From IMG/VR virus record IMGVR_UViG_3300030041_000009, positions 62,001-126,000 of that record: a DNA stretch of 64,000 nucleotides; one strand, 5' to 3'. Positions 15,872 through 52,306 of the stretch are shown in pieces; the stretch's first letter is position 1; every line of letters starts with the position of its first letter. Below the pieces are notes generated by a model. It was not told the origin of the DNA and searched no databases. It was given only the letters and a program-made list of their open reading frames with translations. The translations under genes were made by a program, and so were the position numbers.

Positions 15872-15903
15872 ATGAAAAAATATATTGAATTTATAACTGA
15901 AAA
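15872..15903 (+). pseudogene. 5' fragment (MKKYIEFITE) of a GNAT acetyltransferase gene split by IS607
   Basis: Joins in frame through GAAAA to 18281 onward, giving MKKYIEFITEKKIVIDKKNYKF. Confidence 0.7.
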
Positions 15904-16007
15904 TGTAATACAAAAATAATAAAAGACTATTAATTATAATTATATAACGTTATATAAATTATATTATTTTAGCAAAAAACGGTATTTTTTATTTAATATA
16001 TATAATT

Positions 16008-16610
16008 ATGAAAGCAAAAGAAGTAAAAGAAATATTGGGTATAACCCAAGTTACATTAAGTAAATATATTAAAAAAGGATTAATAAAAATTAATAAAATA
16101 AATAATTATTCATATATTTATAATGACGAAGATGTATATAAATTAATTGGAGTTAAAAAAATAAAACATAAAAGAATTAATGTTAGTTATGCCAGAGTTT
16201 CAAACCAACCAAGAAAAAATGATTTAAAAGAACAATCTAATAGAATTTATGAATTCTCTATATTAAATGATATAGTAATTGAACAGCAATTTGAAGATAT
16301 TAAGTCAGGTATGTCATTTGAAAGAGATGGTTTAAATAAATTAATTAAACTTGTTATTGAAGGTAAAATTGAATGCGTTATAGTTGAAAATAAAGATAGA
16401 TTATGTAGATTTGGATTCGACCTTATTACTGAAGTATTTAAATATTTTGGTACTAAAATTATAGTCATAAGTGATAACATACAAAACAAAAGTTATGAAC
16501 AAGAATTAACAGATGATTTGATTTCTATTATTCATTATTTCTCTATGAAATCATATTCAAATAGAAGAAAATTAAATAAAATTAAAAAAGAACTACAAGA
16601 TAATAAATGA
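16008..16610 (+). CDS. tnpA: IS607 transposase TnpA (MerR-type HTH + serine recombinase)
   Basis: N-terminal HTH (KAKEVKEILGIT..TL), YARVS, DIKSG, ENKDRLCRFG, QELTDDLISII. Confidence 0.92.
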   Translation: MKAKEVKEILGITQVTLSKYIKKGLIKINKINNYSYIYNDEDVYKLIGVKKIKHKRINVSYARVSNQPRKNDLKEQSNRIYEFSILNDIVIEQQFEDIKSGMSFERDGLNKLIKLVIEGKIECVIVENKDRLCRFGFDLITEVFKYFGTKIIVISDNIQNKSYEQELTDDLISIIHYFSMKSYSNRRKLNKIKKELQDNK

Positions 16611-16642
16611 TATAAAATTAAAAAAGAACTACAAGATAATAT

Positions 16643-18244
16643 ATGATATCAATAAAAGTTGGATTTAACGTTAGTGAAGAGGGTAAACTTAAAATATTAA
16701 ATCGTCAGAAACAGTTTTCATATTTCTTTCGTAAACTTTATAAACATTATGATAAAATTAATGATAAAGAATATATTACTAAATTAACTAAAATATATGG
16801 TTTGAGTGTTTACGAGTCTAACTGTTTAATAATTGATGTTAAGACAAAATTTAAGCAAATTCAAACAAATAAAGATAAATTATCACAGGAAATACTTGAT
16901 TTACAAGATGATATAAAAGAATTACAATCAAAAATAAAATTAACCAAAAAAGAAACAAGGAATCTATTTAAATATCAGAAAAACTTAAGTTATAAAAATA
17001 GAAATTTATCAAAGGATATTACTTTCGGTACAAGAAAACTACTAAAAGAAATATCCTACTTAAATAATGATAAAAAGGAAAATAAAAACACTATAATTAC
17101 TAAAACAGATGAATATCATTCGAATAGAATCCTTCCTTTGAGTCTTTACGGATCTAAATGTGATCCTAATTCTAATAGATTTTTTGAATTTGATTTTACT
17201 AATAATCAAATCATTTATAAAATGAACAGCGAGAATAAAATTTATATCAATTATGTAGTTAAAGGTAATTATAAGAAACAATTGAAGGATCTTCAATTAA
17301 TTAAAGACTTAAATATATTACCTATTTCAGTCAAGTTAGATCATGAATATCTTTGTATTACAGTTGATAATGAAATGATTAATGGTGAACCTTTTGATTA
17401 TAAAACTTACATCAAGGAAATCAAAGAAAAGAATAATGGTAAGTACGACAAAAACATTTACATTAAACATAAACAAGAACAAACATCACGAAAACTTGTA
17501 GGCAAAAATCAAAATAGATTTGCTGCAGTTGATTTAAATCCTGATTATATTGGTTTAGTAATCTTAGATAAAACATCAAATGATGAAGTTAAAGTAATTG
17601 ATAGTAAATGTTATGACTTAAGTGAGTTGATGAAAAAATCAGGTAAAGATGTTACCGTAGACGAAAGTCTTTATCTAACCAGAAAAAGAAAACATGAAAT
17701 CGGTAACATTTACGTTAAGATATTTGATATAATAACTCACTACAAGTGTGGTTATTTTGTGATGGAAGACTTAAACTTTAAATCAAATAGTCAGGATGAA
17801 ATGTCAAAAGAAGTTCGTCGTAAAATAAATAATTGTTGGAACTTAGGCTTCCAAACAAATTTAATAAATAAACATTGTGATAATAATGGATTAATATTAA
17901 TAAAAGTTAATCCTTGTTATTCAAGTTTTATCGGAAATATAAATTACTCAGTATTCGACCCTGTTGCAGCAGCAACTGAAATCGGAAGAAGAGGAGCTTA
18001 TAAATATGATAAGAATGGTTTTTATCCAAAATTTACAAGTACAATGCTGAACACAGTGGTTGAAAGATTTATTAATTCTTTTCCTGATGTTTCAGTTGTT
18101 AAAGATTGTGAAAACTGGGTAAGCCTTTATAAACTATTCAAAAAGGCGGGAATTATATACCGTTGGCAGCTAACCGATATAAAGCCAGTTGACTGTTCTA
18201 GCAAAAATACTAAAAGAAACCATTGGAAAGTGTATACTTTTTAA
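16643..18244 (+). CDS. tnpB: TnpB RNA-guided nuclease (large, lacks Zn finger)
   Basis: RuvC motifs AVDLNP, VMEDL, VNPCYSSFIG..DPVAAA.EIGRR; downstream of tnpA. Confidence 0.85.
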   Translation: MISIKVGFNVSEEGKLKILNRQKQFSYFFRKLYKHYDKINDKEYITKLTKIYGLSVYESNCLIIDVKTKFKQIQTNKDKLSQEILDLQDDIKELQSKIKLTKKETRNLFKYQKNLSYKNRNLSKDITFGTRKLLKEISYLNNDKKENKNTIITKTDEYHSNRILPLSLYGSKCDPNSNRFFEFDFTNNQIIYKMNSENKIYINYVVKGNYKKQLKDLQLIKDLNILPISVKLDHEYLCITVDNEMINGEPFDYKTYIKEIKEKNNGKYDKNIYIKHKQEQTSRKLVGKNQNRFAAVDLNPDYIGLVILDKTSNDEVKVIDSKCYDLSELMKKSGKDVTVDESLYLTRKRKHEIGNIYVKIFDIITHYKCGYFVMEDLNFKSNSQDEMSKEVRRKINNCWNLGFQTNLINKHCDNNGLILIKVNPCYSSFIGNINYSVFDPVAAATEIGRRGAYKYDKNGFYPKFTSTMLNTVVERFINSFPDVSVVKDCENWVSLYKLFKKAGIIYRWQLTDIKPVDCSSKNTKRNHWKVYTF

Positions 18245-18275
18245 TTGTACTTTATTGTTTTTGTATATAACAGCA

Positions 18276-18638
18276 GAAAAAAAAATTGTAATTGATAAAA
18301 AGAATTATAAATTTAAGTTGTTTTTAGATGATATTTTAGTATCTGAATCTAGTTTTAGAATAGAACATCCAGATAAATGGTTTAATGAAAAATATGTAAC
18401 TATTCATGATTTAAAAACGGTTAAAAATTTTCAAGGAAAAGGGTATGCTAAATATCTATTAGAACAGATATTTAATTATGTTAAAAATGAACTTAAAATT
18501 AATATTATTACTTTACTTGTTTATAAAAATAATTATAAAGCAGTAAATTTATATTTAAAATGCGGATTTGAAATATATCAAGATTATGATGATAATAAAA
18601 ATCAATCTTTTATACTTATAAAAAAATTAAAAATATGA
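18276..18638 (+). pseudogene. 3' part of GNAT acetyltransferase interrupted by IS607
   Basis: FQGKGYAK acetyl-CoA motif and N..AVNLY.K.GF; the ORF-track N-terminus is IS sequence. Confidence 0.8.
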
Positions 18639-46310: not shown

Positions 46311-47057
46311 ATGAAAAATAAAGAAATATTATTTTTAGTAATTTCGATTTCAGTTATTATATTTTTAATCTATATAAATGTTAAACCATATACTAAATTA
46401 TATTCTAACATTTCTACATCAGATTACAATTTTAGTGAAATTGATAAATCATCTTCGTATAGTGATAAAAAACTTAATATTTTATCAAGTAGTACAGATA
46501 ATAATATTTCTGATGAAAGTGATGAACCTAACATCAGTATACCATCTGATGAATCATATAAGGTTATATCAGTAAATAATGATAATCCGTCATCATTGAG
46601 TTCTTCTGATTATAATGATGTATTATATTCTCATAATAATATGAATGATCATTCAGATATATTAATTCCATCATTTGATTTATATAATTCTAAAAAAGCA
46701 TCAAGTTCTAAATTAGATAATAATTTAACAGCAATAGCTACTACTACTGATTTGTCAAATAGTAGTTCATCAAATAGTAGTTTATCAAATAGTGGTAGTT
46801 CATCACAAAAATGTACTACTCCGCCAACTGGTTGTGGACATTGGGTACATCATGATGGATATTACGAATGGGAATATGATAAATGTGGTTGGCATGAAGT
46901 ATGGATTCCTCCTTATGATGAATGGGTATCTGAACCATGTCCTCCATCTTCTGTTCCAGTTGGTGATATACCTATATTAGAGTTATTTTCTCTTATATTT
47001 ATATATGTATTATATCTTAAACATAAAAAACTAAAACATTTAAAAGAATTATTATGA
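46311..47057 (+). CDS. Surface protein: N-terminal signal/anchor, Ser-rich linker, Cys/Trp domain, PID/PEP-CTERM-like C-terminal anchor
   Basis: VPVGD + TM helix + basic tail; HWVHHDGYYEW...WIPPYDEW. Confidence 0.55.
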   Translation: MKNKEILFLVISISVIIFLIYINVKPYTKLYSNISTSDYNFSEIDKSSSYSDKKLNILSSSTDNNISDESDEPNISIPSDESYKVISVNNDNPSSLSSSDYNDVLYSHNNMNDHSDILIPSFDLYNSKKASSSKLDNNLTAIATTTDLSNSSSSNSSLSNSGSSSQKCTTPPTGCGHWVHHDGYYEWEYDKCGWHEVWIPPYDEWVSEPCPPSSVPVGDIPILELFSLIFIYVLYLKHKKLKHLKELL

Positions 47058-48244
47058 AAAAACTATTATTATTTATTTTTTTGATGATTTCTTTTTCTAT
47101 ATTTTCAGAAAATGATAATCATAAATTTTCAATTGTAGGTGAAATTGGAGTAAATTATTTCGATGGTGATGTAACTCAAGATATCACAAGTATTTTTCCT
47201 GGATCAGTAAGACAAATAACAGTTGGAGGTCTTATTGAGTATACTCTCACTCCAATTTGGGGATTATCAGTTAATTATTATCATTTACCGTTAAAAGGTG
47301 AAAATCATTATGCATCATTTGAAACTAATTATAATACAGGTGATTTTAATGCCACTATTAATTTTACAAAAATGATTTTTCCAATGTCAAATTCTAAATT
47401 TTCTTTTAATGGATCAATTGGAATTGGTTATGCAAATTATACATTTAATCAAAATATCATAAAGCCTGATGTTACATCTAAAGCAATTCCTGATTATGGT
47501 AATGCATTCACTATTCCTATTACATTTTATGCTGAATATAGTTTATATAATAATATAAGTATAGGAGGAAAAATACATTATAGAACTAATAATAAAGATA
47601 ATTTAGAAGGTATAGTTTTAGCTTTTAGTACACCTGAAGGAGTAAAACATTATAGTAGTGGTGGATATGATAGCAATTCTAATGATAATATTGATGTATT
47701 TACACTCTATGCTCGTTATAAATTTAAATCAAAAGAATCTAAATCTATAGAAATTAATAAAAAATTAGAAAAGTATTCAGATTATGATAAACCTTGTTGT
47801 GGTACAACAGTTAATATAACTAATAATTATAATACAAATACAAATACTATTTATAATGGGTGTAAAACTTGTAATGATAGTACTACATATGCAAATAATA
47901 ATGGTATAAATGATGAATTTGTTAATAAAATTCCAAGTATTTATTTTGATTTCGATAAATATAATTTAGATAATACTGCATTAAATATTATTAAACATGT
48001 TGCGTTTATAATGAGAAAATATCCAGATTATAATGTTGAAATAAGAGGATATTGTGATTATATTGGTAATGTACCTTATAATGATAAATTAAGCATGAAT
48101 AGAGTTAATATGGTTAAAAATGAATTAGTAAATACATATAAAATTTCAGAGGATCATATTATCATAAATGGATTAGGTAAAATTGATACTCCAAAAATGA
48201 TGTATAGAATTAATAGACGTTGTGATTTCTTCTTCTTTAAATAA
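47054..48244 (+). CDS. OmpA-family outer membrane protein (beta-barrel + OmpA-C peptidoglycan-binding domain)
   Basis: Signal peptide; IYFDFDKY.L, I.GYCD..G...YN..LS..R, NRRCDF. Confidence 0.85.
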   Translation: MKKLLLFIFLMISFSIFSENDNHKFSIVGEIGVNYFDGDVTQDITSIFPGSVRQITVGGLIEYTLTPIWGLSVNYYHLPLKGENHYASFETNYNTGDFNATINFTKMIFPMSNSKFSFNGSIGIGYANYTFNQNIIKPDVTSKAIPDYGNAFTIPITFYAEYSLYNNISIGGKIHYRTNNKDNLEGIVLAFSTPEGVKHYSSGGYDSNSNDNIDVFTLYARYKFKSKESKSIEINKKLEKYSDYDKPCCGTTVNITNNYNTNTNTIYNGCKTCNDSTTYANNNGINDEFVNKIPSIYFDFDKYNLDNTALNIIKHVAFIMRKYPDYNVEIRGYCDYIGNVPYNDKLSMNRVNMVKNELVNTYKISEDHIIINGLGKIDTPKMMYRINRRCDFFFFK

Positions 48245-49074: not shown

Positions 49075-49521
49075 ATGAATATGTTAAATAAAATAATAAA
49101 AAATATTTTAAAAATATTTAAGAATTTTTATTACTTTTTATATACTCCTATGAAATTGTATGATACCTATCATGCATTAGATATTTTAGTTGTATATTTA
49201 GAAAATGTTAAAATTATTAATATTGAAATTATAATAGGTAATTGTGTAATAACTTTCTCTGATAATTCAGTATTAACTTTTTGGAATTCTAGATGGAATG
49301 CTTGGATGGCTTATGGAACAATGAAATTTAGTAATGGAAGAATAATGAAATGGAATAAAAAACAACCATCTTGTGAAGTTTATTATAAATATAAAAAATT
49401 AATTCTAAATCATGAAAAATCTAAAAATCATAAAATAGATAATGTAGAAATTGAAGATTTTTCTGATTGCTTACCTATTAAATTACTTAGAAAACAAAAA
49501 TTAAAAAATATTAAAAAATAA
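49075..49521 (+). CDS. RKxKL-tagged protein, intact paralog of the tnpB-split gene
   Basis: LDIL.VYLENVKI...RW..WM..G.M.F.NG..W...PS.EV.YKYKKLIL...CLPIKL.RK.KLKNIKK. Confidence 0.7.
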   Translation: MNMLNKIIKNILKIFKNFYYFLYTPMKLYDTYHALDILVVYLENVKIINIEIIIGNCVITFSDNSVLTFWNSRWNAWMAYGTMKFSNGRIMKWNKKQPSCEVYYKYKKLILNHEKSKNHKIDNVEIEDFSDCLPIKLLRKQKLKNIKK

Positions 49522-49782
49522 TGAATAAGTTATTAAAAAAAATATATTACGGGTTTTTATGGCATAATCATATAAAATATGATTATTATCCTTTGTTAGA
49601 TATTTTACTTGTATATTTAGAAAATGTTAAAATTTCATCTATTAATGTAGATAATTATTATGCTACAATATTATTTTATGATAATTCAATATTAAAATTT
49701 TTGATTTGTGATGATAATATTCATTTTACTGTTAAAGATTATAATAGATGGTATATATGGATGAGCAAAGGTGAAATGTCAT
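49521..49782 (+). pseudogene. 5' half of gene split by the solo tnpB element
   Basis: Matches the N-half of 49075; stop codon created by the insertion. Confidence 0.85.
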
Positions 49783-51591
49783 AGTTAATAGCTATCAGTT
49801 TTAATATAATATATAAACTTTTATGATAAAAACTGATATAATAATTTTATTATATAGTACAAATATACTATTAAATTTTGATTCTACCAAATAAACGATT
49901 TAAATAAATGTTAACTATTAAATTAAAAATAAAAGAGTGCTTACAAGCAGAGATAATAGATCAATATTGTTCTGACTACACTGGTTTGTTTTATACTCTT
50001 TATAATCATTTTGATTTAATTGATGATGATTATATAAAATCACTATTAAATAATTCTGTGTTAGACAAATCCATGTTTGATTGTTGTATTTCTGATGTGA
50101 AAACAAAACTTAAACAGCACGAAGCAACCAAAGAAAAGAAATCAAAAAAGATAATTGATATTCAGAAATGTCTTGATAATAACGAATTCAAAACAAAAAA
50201 GGAAAAACGTAAAAAATATAATTTAATAAATAATCTAGCAAGAATTAAACGAAATATAAACAATAATATTACATTTGGTGGTAAAGCACTACAACGTGAA
50301 ATCACGAAATTACATTTAAATATTTATAAAACTGAGCTACAGCTAACAAAGATTGATATTAAATCAACAGATTACAAGAAATTTCTTGAATATAAGAAAG
50401 AATTAATAGAAAGGTTAGGGCTCAAGAAATTAGAGTTCACATCAAAACGTAAATTAGGAATTTATTTAATCGGACGTGCCTGTGAAAAAGGTAACAGAAA
50501 AATTGATTTCGATCTAATTAATAATAAAATCACTTTCAAACCATCAAGAGATTTTAAAATTGATATCACTTTTAAAACTAACGGCAAAAAACAAAAAAAT
50601 AAATTAATTAAAATTCAAGAAATGTCTAACCTGAATTTAATGCCAGTGACCATAAGATTATCAAACGAATATATTCATTTATCTTATGACGAAGAGTTAT
50701 TAAATGGTTATGAATTCAATCAATTGGACTGCAAGAAAGAACAGTTACTTGCGTTAAGCAAAGAAAGTAAAAAGGAAATTTATATAAAGCATAAGAATGA
50801 ACAAAATGATAGAAAAAAAGTAGGTAAGCTATCAAATCGTTACATGGCGGTTGATTTAAATCCAAAGTTTATCGGTTTAAGTATATTTGATGACATTAAT
50901 GATGAGCAGAAATTAATTCATGTTCAGTGCTTTATTTTATCTGAGTTAAGTACGAAATTAAGTTTAAGCTCTTCAGACAAGAAACAAGTTAAACAAAATG
51001 ATAAAAGAAAACATGAAATAAAAGAAGTCTGGAAACAAATATTCATGATGTGTAAGCACTTCAGAGTGTATAATTTTGTGATGGAAGATCTTGATTTTAA
51101 AGATAAACAATCAAAAGATACAGTAGGTAAAGAGTTAAATAAACAAACTAAAAATCTATGGCATCGAACTTTAACGACCAACTTGATTACTAAATATTGT
51201 AATGAAAATGGCTTAAATAAAATAGAGGTAAACGCTGCTTATAGTAGTTTTATCGGAAATATGATACATACCTTCTTTGACCCAATTTCATCTAGCATTG
51301 AAATTGGCAGTAGAGGGATGAATAAATTTAAAAAAGGTAGTTCTATATACCCGTGTATGAATTTAATAAATCAAGAGAAATTGTTTTATCTACTTGGTGA
51401 GAATATCAACACAACACAGGATAATTGGATTCAATTATATAGAAAGACCAACCAACTGAAGTATCGGAACATGTTATTAAAAGATGATGTGTTAATAGAC
51501 TATCACTTAGGAAATTGTAAAAGTAAAGTTAGAATTGTTACCCAACAAATCTAATAAAATACTACAAATTACTATATTTTAGTTACCTCAT
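49783..51591 (+). mobile_element. Non-autonomous tnpB-only element (IS200/IS605/IS1341- or IS607-derived), 1809 bp
   Basis: TCAT at both junctions (49779-82, 51588-91); removal restores the ORF; subterminal inverted repeat 49793-49802 / 49829-49838. Confidence 0.85.
49908..51554 (+). CDS. tnpB: TnpB RNA-guided nuclease (large, lacks Zn finger)
   Basis: MAVDLNP, VMEDL, VNAAYSSFIG..DP; homologous to 16643. Confidence 0.85.
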   Translation: MLTIKLKIKECLQAEIIDQYCSDYTGLFYTLYNHFDLIDDDYIKSLLNNSVLDKSMFDCCISDVKTKLKQHEATKEKKSKKIIDIQKCLDNNEFKTKKEKRKKYNLINNLARIKRNINNNITFGGKALQREITKLHLNIYKTELQLTKIDIKSTDYKKFLEYKKELIERLGLKKLEFTSKRKLGIYLIGRACEKGNRKIDFDLINNKITFKPSRDFKIDITFKTNGKKQKNKLIKIQEMSNLNLMPVTIRLSNEYIHLSYDEELLNGYEFNQLDCKKEQLLALSKESKKEIYIKHKNEQNDRKKVGKLSNRYMAVDLNPKFIGLSIFDDINDEQKLIHVQCFILSELSTKLSLSSSDKKQVKQNDKRKHEIKEVWKQIFMMCKHFRVYNFVMEDLDFKDKQSKDTVGKELNKQTKNLWHRTLTTNLITKYCNENGLNKIEVNAAYSSFIGNMIHTFFDPISSSIEIGSRGMNKFKKGSSIYPCMNLINQEKLFYLLGENINTTQDNWIQLYRKTNQLKYRNMLLKDDVLIDYHLGNCKSKVRIVTQQI

Positions 51592-51785
51592 TTCATAATG
51601 GTAATACAATTGATTGGAGAAACGATTCTCCATCACGTGAAGTATTATATAAATACAAAAAACTTATTTTGAAGTATGAAAAAGATGAAATAATAAGAAA
51701 AAAAGAAGCTGATATGTTGAAATATAATAATTGTTTACCAATTAAATTAGTTAGAAAAGAAAAATTAAAAAATATTAAAAAATAA
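51592..51785 (+). pseudogene. 3' half of gene split by the tnpB element
   Basis: Encodes FHNGNTIDWRNDSPSREVLYKYKKLIL...CLPIKLVRKEKLKNIKK. Confidence 0.85.
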
Positions 51786-51790
51786 TAAAA

Positions 51791-52306
51791 ATGGGTTTAG
51801 ATATATCATATTATAGTAAAATTAAAATATCAGAAAGTAATGACGATGATGACGATAATTATATTGAAAATCATAAATATTTCATATATCAATTAGGTTC
51901 ATTAAAAAATGGTCAATGTTATCATGAAACAGATGAATCTGAAAGTGACTCTTTTCATGTTGGATCATGTTCAGGTTATGGTGTTTGGAGAAAGAATTTA
52001 TTAGAAATGCTAGGATATATTAGTATGCAAGATGTATTTAATGATTTTGATACAAATATTAGAAAAATTAAATTAGATGAAATTAATTCAGGAGAAAAAT
52101 ATGTAGCTAAATCTTTTTATGAAATTATAATATTCAGTGATTGTGAAGGCGTTATAGGACCTGAAATATCAAAAAAACTATATGAAGATTTTGTTGAATT
52201 TGATAAAGTAGCAATTAGTCAAGGAGATTATTTTTATGATATTTATTCTAAATTTAAAGAAGCATTTAGAGTAGCATCAGATAATGGACTTGTTTGTTTT
52301 AGTTAA
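51791..52306 (+). CDS. Conserved phage hypothetical protein
   Basis: MGLDI..GS.SGY..WR..FSDCEGVIG...KKLY.DF. Confidence 0.6.
   Translation: MGLDISYYSKIKISESNDDDDDNYIENHKYFIYQLGSLKNGQCYHETDESESDSFHVGSCSGYGVWRKNLLEMLGYISMQDVFNDFDTNIRKIKLDEINSGEKYVAKSFYEIIIFSDCEGVIGPEISKKLYEDFVEFDKVAISQGDYFYDIYSKFKEAFRVASDNGLVCFS

Follow-up and report, generated by a model that had tools for sequence, protein, structure and literature searches.

A probable transposase-less IS607-like element encoding a divergent TnpB/Cas12-fold protein in a large tailed phage, and its empty allele in a related phage

IS607 elements insert by exchange over an identical 2-bp core without duplicating their target (PMC6188088), and the published members use a GG core (PMC6188088, PMC13565253). 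The TnpB proteins of these elements are RNA-guided nucleases with a transposon-adjacent motif (TAM) beside the left end (PMC11061315). Some branches of TnpB have lost the zinc finger, and one clade, RIIIr-4, is virus-enriched and associated with ribbon-helix-helix (RHH)/MazE proteins (Altae-Tran et al. 2023, PMC10691335); in this clade the RuvC-III aspartate is replaced by histidine (PMC10691335). Here we analyse an insertion of 1809 bp in a phage gene, which carries a single long gene for a protein of 548 amino acids (aa). It lies in a window of 64 kb, the whole stretch of DNA under study, which comprises bases 62001-126000 of a 256-kb IMG/VR virus record (IMGVR_UViG_3300030041_000009) and has a G+C content of about 22%. 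An earlier note, made from the letters of this window, had described the insertion as a solo tnpB element with a definable TAM and guide. Taking the evidence together, we consider it probable that the region belongs, as a non-autonomous copy without a transposase, to an IS607-like family living in tailed, mostly large phages, and from its sequence we infer a guided mechanism of homing or exclusion.

The resemblance to IS607 is one of organisation. As in IS607, IS1535 and ISFba1, a tnpA gene for a protein with a MerR-type helix-turn-helix (HTH) and a resolvase domain precedes the tnpB-like gene, both in relatives of the element and in a second copy in the window. The element has no terminal inverted repeats and no target duplication beyond a shared TC(AT), a short identical core occurs in the target and at both junctions, and many copies in the family are solo tnpB elements, all of which is also true of the IS607 family. 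The differences lie in the core, which is TC (TCAT in this copy) rather than GG, with no GG or G-rich target; in the flanking motif, GTC as against the G-rich TAMs AGGAG and GAGGG; in the hosts, which here are AT-rich tailed phages; and in the absence of tnpA from this copy. Unlike IS607 TnpB, the protein is also missed by TnpB sequence profiles and has no TNB zinc finger.

The element and the genes on either side of it are made up as follows.

49075-49521, + strand: intact tandem paralogue of the interrupted gene, recognised by gapless alignment over the junction
49521-49782, + strand: N-terminal part of the interrupted gene, 87 codons; its open reading frame (ORF; 49521-49784) is closed by a TAG that the insertion created just inside the insert
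49783-51591, + strand: inserted element, 1809 bp, absent from contigs L173 and L174; comparison within the family favours 49781-51589
49783-49907, + strand: non-coding left end, 125 nt, holding an inverted repeat (49793-49805 / 49826-49838)
49908-51554, + strand: coding sequence of the 548-aa protein, a divergent member of the TnpB/Cas12 fold as predicted from alignment, an AF2 model, and Foldseek and VIA matches
51592-51785, + strand: C-terminal part of the interrupted gene, 64 codons and stop, the in-frame continuation in the empty allele

The element has the same orientation as the gene that it interrupts, and TCAT stands at 49779-49782 and again at 51588-51591. Deletion of 49783-51591 (1809 nt) joins the flanks as ...GAA ATG TCA T/TT CAT AAT GGT... 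and yields an ORF of 151 aa. As the earlier note had reported, this restores a paralogue of the neighbouring gene at 49075-49521, and the alignment of the two runs without a gap over the junction (WMSKGEMS/FHNGNTIDW against WMAYGTMKFSNGRIMKW). A search with the N-terminal fragment protein returned a protein of 151 aa, P0384, that is the predicted restored ORF save for the change G11W. P0384 is encoded on two ENA contigs, L173 and L174, which come from two samples and share the same upstream gene context. The junction on both contigs reads ...GGTGAAATGTCAT/TTCATAATGG..., which can also be written ...GGTGAAATGTCAT/TTCATAATGGTAATAC..., with a single TCAT and no further change. On either side of the junction (231 nt on the left, 204 nt on the right) the two contigs are 100% identical to the window, an agreement of filled and empty flanks that is far beyond chance. 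From window position 51796 onwards they carry unrelated DNA in place of the gene at 51791-52306. An empty allele exists, then, in a closely related, mosaic phage, with exactly the junction that had been predicted from the filled sequence and not a different one. The mosaic breakpoint at 51796 lies directly beside the insertion site, just after the end of the interrupted gene.

Because TCAT is present at both junctions, the borders can slide by up to 4 bp without any change in the product, and the registers from 49779-51587 through 49783-51591 are equivalent. The description of a solo, transposase-less element with exactly definable ends is thus borne out, with a register that is ambiguous by 4 bp. 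Also present in the sequence as described are the 37 nt from the end of the tnpB-like stop codon (51554) to 51591 and the inverted repeat near the left end, which is perfect over 10 bp (49793-49802 / 49829-49838) and extends to 13 nt at 92% (49793-49805 / 49826-49838) with a loop of 20 nt. This repeat is real, but the left ends of relatives do not share it.

The two tandem paralogues (49075-49521, and 49521-49782 with 51592-51785) are small genes with no Pfam match, and the only database relatives of the N-terminal part of the interrupted copy are its own allele and the empty allele. Searches with Rfam, at the gathering threshold and by E-value, found no group I intron at the element, whose left end comprises just 125 nt. 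Since no such intron was detected, the interrupted gene is probably inactivated rather than spliced, and in this the element differs from an IStron. Pattern searches for the empty junction found no exact pattern in IMG/VR and no gapped flank pattern in the JGI metagenome contigs, so that the N-terminal fragment protein was the one route that led to the empty allele. One 1803-bp contig, L006, is identical in three samples and corresponds to window positions 49797-51599, beginning 14 nt inside the left end and stopping 8 nt beyond the right end. A simple k=141 bubble does not fit these limits, which suggest breaks in the assembly graph at the borders of the element, for example from mixed filled and empty alleles.

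Relatives of the element place it in a family that is mobile. Near-identical copies occur in differing contexts with sharp borders and with ends 7-35 nt past the stop codon, as in L085, L087 and L094 (2.28 kb, with tnpA), L088 and L093 (1.89 kb, solo), L014/L099, L125/L127 and many others. Several metagenome contigs terminate exactly at the right end. Contigs of about 2.0-2.7 kb, L128 and L134 among them, often consist of one element and end at the terminus ...GTGTCTGA; contigs equal to one element are the mark of a mobile element that is repeated or polymorphic in those communities.

Comparison of these copies shows that the right ends of the family fall into classes with conserved termini. 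Two features at the right end of the present element follow from this comparison.

51577-51589, + strand: conserved right-end terminus TTTTAGTTACCTC; relatives have TTTT.G.TATCTC
51590-51609, + strand: predicted guide-encoding flank, the target in the empty allele, ATTTCATAATGGTAATACAA, by analogy with IS605 and IS607 TnpB (PMC8612924, PMC11061315)

Similarity among related copies stops directly after the CTC that ends at 51589. At the left, six elements of the class share the arrangement flank-G-TC-(A/G)..., and the left end of the present element, GTCATAGT when the preceding G is counted, matches GTCATAGT of L088 and resembles the solo relatives L088 and L093. TC, not the GG of IS607, is invariant at both junctions in the six related elements, and identity between the junctions extends to 3-4 bp in five of them (TCAT, TCGT, TCAT, TCAT, TCA), L088 having TC only. 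Immediately 5' of TC, each of the six left flanks has G and every right end C. In the case at hand the empty allele reads AAATGTC/AT... and the right end of the filled allele TTACCTC/AT...

TnpB spares its own element. If the nuclease encoded here does likewise, its TAM must read the position 5' of TC, where target and element differ, and GTC as opposed to CTC could be a predicted TAM that tells target from self. The TAM of about (G)TCAT put forward in the earlier note is therefore supported in substance, with the correction that the G, found in six of six left flanks, is the discriminating base and not an optional one. Its guide, placed at 51592-51611 and starting with TTCATAATGG, has to be shifted: because conservation ends at CTC, the predicted guide more probably starts two bases earlier, at 51590 (ATTTCATAATGG...).

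These ends also bear on an alternative in which the guided nuclease is kept and mobility given up. The element would then be fixed in the phage, which exploits it as a weapon or device of marker exclusion whose guide targets competitors with the uninterrupted allele, much as T-even phages use free-standing homing endonucleases, with or without homing. Such a role would account for the single site, identical on 19 contigs and in 7 IMG/VR records, for an element with an intact catalytic triad and no tnpA, and for an empty allele in a related mosaic phage that diverges 204 nt downstream. The element nevertheless retains the conserved ends and the junction rule of its family, just as the mobile copies do, and use as a weapon does not exclude homing, both of which need the same RNA-guided cleavage. 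We consider it unlikely that the element is such a fixed nuclease.

The 548-aa protein was compared with its family at the levels of sequence and predicted structure. At least 215 homologues of 34-55% identity are found in a clustered protein database, a few of which are labelled 'IS605 OrfB family transposase' by JGI. An exhaustive profile search returned 1,296 clusters (at 50% identity) with E<=1e-3, and 580 with E<=1e-30. The closest ESM-Atlas clusters are mostly from Uroviricota, and the nuclease family is mostly borne by tailed phages, most of them large. The TnpB profiles PF01385 (OrfB_IS605) and PF07282 (TNB) and those of NCBIfam match neither the protein, nor 40 family members, nor 9 shorter relatives; the PF07282 match in the record falls on another gene.

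An alignment of 40 sequences has three invariant acidic residues, D316 (AVDLNP), E393 (VMEDL) and D458 (FDP..S..EIG.RG), the split D...E...D triad of the RuvC (RNase H-fold) domain of TnpB and Cas12. In an AF2 (AlphaFold) model (pLDDT 88, pTM 0.76), D316 lies at the end of beta1, E393 at the end of beta4 and D458 at the start of the last helix. The top Foldseek matches in the PDB, down to E 1e-6, are solely Cas12f, Cas12k, Cas12p, Cas12g and Cas12h, followed by Fanzor2 and TnpB. The structural match to Cas12f, Cas12k and TnpB extends beyond the RuvC core and spans the WED and REC lobes from residue 1, so that the bilobed architecture with WED and REC before RuvC is present. The REC region contains a long helical insertion (about residues 54-180), and there is a C-terminal extension (about residues 480-548). 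No conserved cysteine occurs in the 40-sequence alignment, and the zinc-finger/TNB insertion is absent, because just 11 residues separate Y445-S446-S447 from D458. An hhalign comparison with canonical TnpBs is colinear from the RuvC-I aspartate to the Y(T/S)S motif and weak (E 0.008, probability 5%). The canonical alignment was seeded from a third, ordinary tnpB of the same phage record, outside the window (G000:C1:28540-29778; L171:1414-2652, minus strand), which codes for 412 aa with both PF01385 and PF07282. The phage record thus holds three TnpB-type genes of two very different lineages.

The positions of the D-E-D triad are those of ISDra2 and ISFba1 TnpB and of Cas12f (8exa, 8h1j, 8iaz, 7wju, 9i8y), and the structured 3' region of the present element, predicted to code for an RNA, would likewise overlap the coding sequence and end at the right end. 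It differs from them in its length of 548 aa as against about 400, in the long REC insertion and the C-terminal extension, in the lack of a zinc-finger/TNB insertion, and in an identity of 8-14% without a significant sequence match. Loss of the zinc finger, viral enrichment and an RHH-like ORF upstream in the solo relatives L088 and L093 recall the RIIIr-4 clade; its published description sets it apart, D458 being invariant here. The invariant triad likewise distinguishes the protein from TldR, the nuclease-dead TnpB-like repressors. On its predicted structure and catalytic motifs, and not by sequence models, the protein is a highly divergent, zinc-finger-less member of the TnpB/Cas12 fold. 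The name tnpB used in the earlier note is upheld in this sense, by fold and intact RuvC triad, but not by any sequence-profile match or by a TNB zinc finger.

We then consider the 3' end of the gene, for which the following features are predicted.

51454-51589, + strand: predicted omegaRNA scaffold, overlapping the last 100 nt of the coding sequence, from the fold, the structure signal of the family and covariation
51458-51463, + strand: GAAGTA within the LKYRN codons, 5' strand of the scaffold, predicted to pair with the right-end terminus
51468-51493, + strand: predicted hairpin A
51529-51554, + strand: predicted hairpin B, which ends at the stop codon

Folded on its own, 51440-51589 is modestly more stable than shuffled sequences (z -2.2). 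Among 74 non-redundant family members, the last 140-nt window (stop-110 to stop+30) has a mean minimum free energy z of -2.9, with 70% of members below -2. The next 140 nt upstream give z -2.1, and three further windows in the coding sequence -0.6 to -0.9 (Wilcoxon p 1.5e-11); structure is unusually strong over the final ~250 nt of family members. The sense strand is stabler than the antisense in 57 of the 74 (p 2e-8), and this bias argues for an RNA rather than a DNA site. Between relatives, the hairpins that occupy equivalent positions have different sequences (TATAAATCTA...TAGATTTATA versus TATAAATCGA...TCGATTTATA).

A long-range pairing was found as well. About 125 nt upstream of the right-end hexamer lie six bases of which it is the reverse complement. 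They fall in the codons for the conserved motif (L/I)(R/K)Y-R-N, starting with the third base of the L/I codon, taking in the whole R/K codon and stopping after the second base of the Y codon. The two strands covary, most often as GAGATA:TATCTC and otherwise as TAGATA:TATCTA, TAAGTAC:GTACTTA, GAAATA:TATTTT, TAGATACC:GGTATCTA and TCAGATACC:GGTGTCTGA. For five groups, copies in differing contexts gave an independent position for the right end; in each group the complement falls no more than 1 nt from this boundary and outscores all of 66 control registers. In the present element GAAGTA (51458-63) faces TACCTC (51584-89) with five of six bases paired and a compensatory change from A-U to G-C relative to its relatives. 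This covariation between the right end and the LRYRN codons fits an omegaRNA that ends at 51589, and the long-range helix would fix the likely scaffold at about 51454-51589. The scaffold overlapping the coding sequence that the earlier note had proposed is consistent with this family-wide structure over the end of the gene. A helix with its 3' strand next to the guide resembles the repeat:anti-repeat logic of the guide RNAs of Cas12f and TnpB.

Other searches of this region were negative. Rfam gave no match and no known TnpB-associated RNA motif, and MAFFT with RNAalifold on 15 right ends returned no consensus structure, the hairpins being misaligned; shuffling statistics and anchored covariation were used in place of an alignment consensus. 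A promoter and terminator scan found no terminator and was uninformative.

If the protein were instead a RuvC-type nuclease or an accessory to a resolvase that is not RNA-guided, the 3' structure would be a terminator or a recombinase site. The absence of a terminator from the scan speaks against this, as do the structural match that includes the WED and REC lobes from residue 1 and long-range covariation with coding bases, which is unexpected for a terminator or a double-stranded DNA site. Such a protein is, in our assessment, improbable.

The partner transposase of the family is an IS607-type serine recombinase and not a Y1 TnpA. A tnpA gene for an HTH and resolvase protein lies directly upstream in 30 of the 93 non-redundant loci that have enough upstream DNA, the rest being solo. 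The closest relatives, P0002 and P0003 (both 55%), P0011 (52%) and L014 (50%), all abut such a gene of 191-192 aa. The present element itself lacks an IS607 TnpA, 125 non-coding nt preceding its coding sequence. In the 256-kb record the sole resolvase is the tnpA of the window, at 16008-16610, which the earlier note had overlooked in seeking a Y1 TnpA. That note was right that the window holds no Y1 TnpA: PF01797 has no match even in the whole record. Of two things that it had proposed to look for in the genome, similar ends and a tnpA, a search of IMG/VR with the right end of the element returned the same phage and site only, with no second site, while a tnpA, of the IS607 type, is present in the window. 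That gene belongs to the second copy.

16008-18244, + strand: second, autonomous-type copy, with tnpA (MerR-HTH and resolvase, 200 aa) at 16008-16610 followed by a 533-aa paralogue at 16643-18244

The 533-aa paralogue (16643-18244) is 36% identical to the 548-aa protein. The second copy probably spans about 15949-18271, with TATATAAC at both junctions (15941-48 and 18264-71), and its right-end class ...TTGTTTTTGTATATA is common to L022, L027, L029, L030, L035 and L045. It was also considered whether this copy splits a gene that begins at 15873; the idea was dropped, as relatives set the right end at about 18269-71. The copy stands just upstream of an ORF for a GNAT acetyltransferase (18189-18638) that has no ATG start. 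Among the solo relatives, L088 (2838-2993) and, at the same place, L093 carry an RHH-like ORF of 51 aa (FNFRVERELKKMF...) between the left end and the nuclease gene. This ORF recalls the Arc/MazE-like partners of some TnpB clades and is absent from the present element.

The framework of the earlier note was that of IS200/IS605, in which the element would move as single-stranded DNA, mobilised in trans by a Y1 (HUH) TnpA, and insert 3' of a TCAT that matches the right-end cleavage site. TCAT at the left flank and at the tip of the right end agrees with this, and so do an inverted repeat near the left end that could form a hairpin and a hairpin near the right end. The left-end repeat is, however, missing from the left ends of relatives, and the sense-biased 3' structure with covariation over ~125 nt points to an RNA and not to a subterminal DNA hairpin. 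Unlike IS200/IS605 elements, moreover, the family has serine recombinases adjoining its members (in the 30 of 93 loci given above) and the record has no Y1 TnpA, which makes this mode of movement very improbable. A cut-and-paste element with a 4-bp target-site duplication of TCAT and an unseen DDE-type transposase would explain TCAT on both sides of the insert and once in the empty allele, and the 3-4 bp of identity in five of six relatives, but is extremely improbable, given that terminal inverted repeats are lacking, that TC is invariant and part of the conserved ends while L088 and L093 share just 2-3 bp, and that the transposase of the family is a serine recombinase, which makes no duplications (PMC6188088).

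The source genome is a large tailed phage and not a giant eukaryotic virus, because genes in the window include those for a tail spike, a tail fibre, UvsW-type and other phage helicases and a glycosyltransferase, and T4 Gp23 and other T4-type genes adjoin relatives of the element. An origin from a giant virus, with a Fanzor, was ruled out by the tail spike, tail fibre and phage helicases and by Gp23 beside relatives; further evidence against it is that the best viral structure matches are proteins of Myoviridae and of a Campylobacter phage. The Gp23 profile has no match in the 256-kb record, and likewise none in any control genome, so that its absence from the record carries no weight. CheckV puts the completeness of the record at 36%. 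The stretch is contained in 24 sequencing runs, from peat (most), permafrost and freshwater metagenomes, six of which are metatranscriptomes with small shares. Upstream of the tandem paralogues, a phage ORF of 396 aa (47054-48244) combines an N-terminus resembling a signal peptide with an OmpA C-terminal domain (PF00691, E 5e-13).

Together these data allow us to propose how a non-autonomous, IS607-like element of this kind might work. A circular intermediate would insert into the target through a crossover that a serine recombinase, provided in trans by a related autonomous element, catalyses at the TC core; IS607 inserts in this way at GG. Transcripts running through the gene would give an omegaRNA of ~135 nt (about 51454-51589), the guide-proximal 3' strand of which is the right-end terminus, paired with the LKYRN codons. 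Running on into the flank, the RNA would carry a guide that matches ATTTCATAATGG... The ribonucleoprotein would then cut the empty allele, with GTC 5' of the target, and spare the filled allele, with CTC. During co-infection the filled genome would serve as the template on which the cut is repaired, so that the empty one would acquire the element (homing), and a break left unrepaired would harm the competing phage (exclusion).

Several points weigh against this proposal. With respect to the protein, there is no Pfam, NCBIfam, PHROGs or PDB sequence match, either for the single sequence or as a 40-sequence profile, and its assignment to the family of TnpB and Cas12 draws on the predicted structure and the profile-profile match of 5% probability. 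As to the RNA, the closing helix in the present element has one A.C mismatch, RNAfold favours a shifted 11-bp helix (51454-64 / 51574-84), and in DNA this AT-rich the best helix pairing the LRY codons with the 3' region does not reach significance when loci are taken one at a time. The 4-bp identity at the junctions is formally indistinguishable from a 4-bp target duplication, which is unlikely because of the serine recombinase and the lack of inverted ends. The only serine recombinase of the 256-kb record belongs to an element with different ends, for which reason the tnpA of the window is a doubtful helper and trans-mobilisation is unproven. Element and context are identical wherever they were found, on the 19 contigs and in the 7 IMG/VR records, at one site only, and the circle junction, in which the right end is joined to the left, was not found in IMG/VR. 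Since neither a circle junction nor a second insertion site was found, current mobility in the source phage is unproven. Finally, the filled and empty alleles are known from different samples and not from the same one.

Filled and empty alleles in related phages are also found with the free-standing homing endonucleases of T-even phages (Seg, Mob) and with intron and IStron homing. As in those systems, spread would be expected during co-infection, with the empty allele cut and repaired from the filled one. Unlike the T-even endonucleases, recognition here would be by a guide RNA and not by the protein, and the element has discrete transposon ends. The pair of alleles described here makes homing between phages plausible. 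Homing by the protein-guided endonucleases of T-even phages has been shown, as has homing by TnpB in bacteria and plasmids; a limited literature search found no demonstration of RNA-guided homing between phages. More tentatively, the family may represent an uncharacterised, zinc-finger-less TnpB lineage of ~1,300 clusters, invisible to standard sequence profiles and mostly phage-borne, on IS607-type elements with a TC crossover, in which the omegaRNA is closed by the pairing of the last six bases of the transposon with the LRYRN codons and which might act as an RNA-guided gene drive between co-infecting peat phages. We regard this wider reading, taken as a whole, as doubtful.

The family bears on the annotation of phage genomes, in that a large group missed by Pfam, NCBIfam and PHROGs would make zinc-finger-less TnpB-like nucleases common in tailed phages; because the family is missed by these collections, annotation pipelines undercount such nucleases. 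A TC core with a GTC flank would extend the target repertoire of IS607-type elements into AT-rich DNA and, if the nuclease is active, would provide a guided nuclease for AT-rich contexts with a short TAM. The same bases would serve as a protein motif, as the closing helix of a predicted RNA and as a recombination site, an unusually compact, multi-layered form of coding. The specific value of the locus lies in this overlap and in its allele pair: a natural pair of filled and empty alleles makes RNA-guided homing, or the exclusion of competitors, between phages directly testable.

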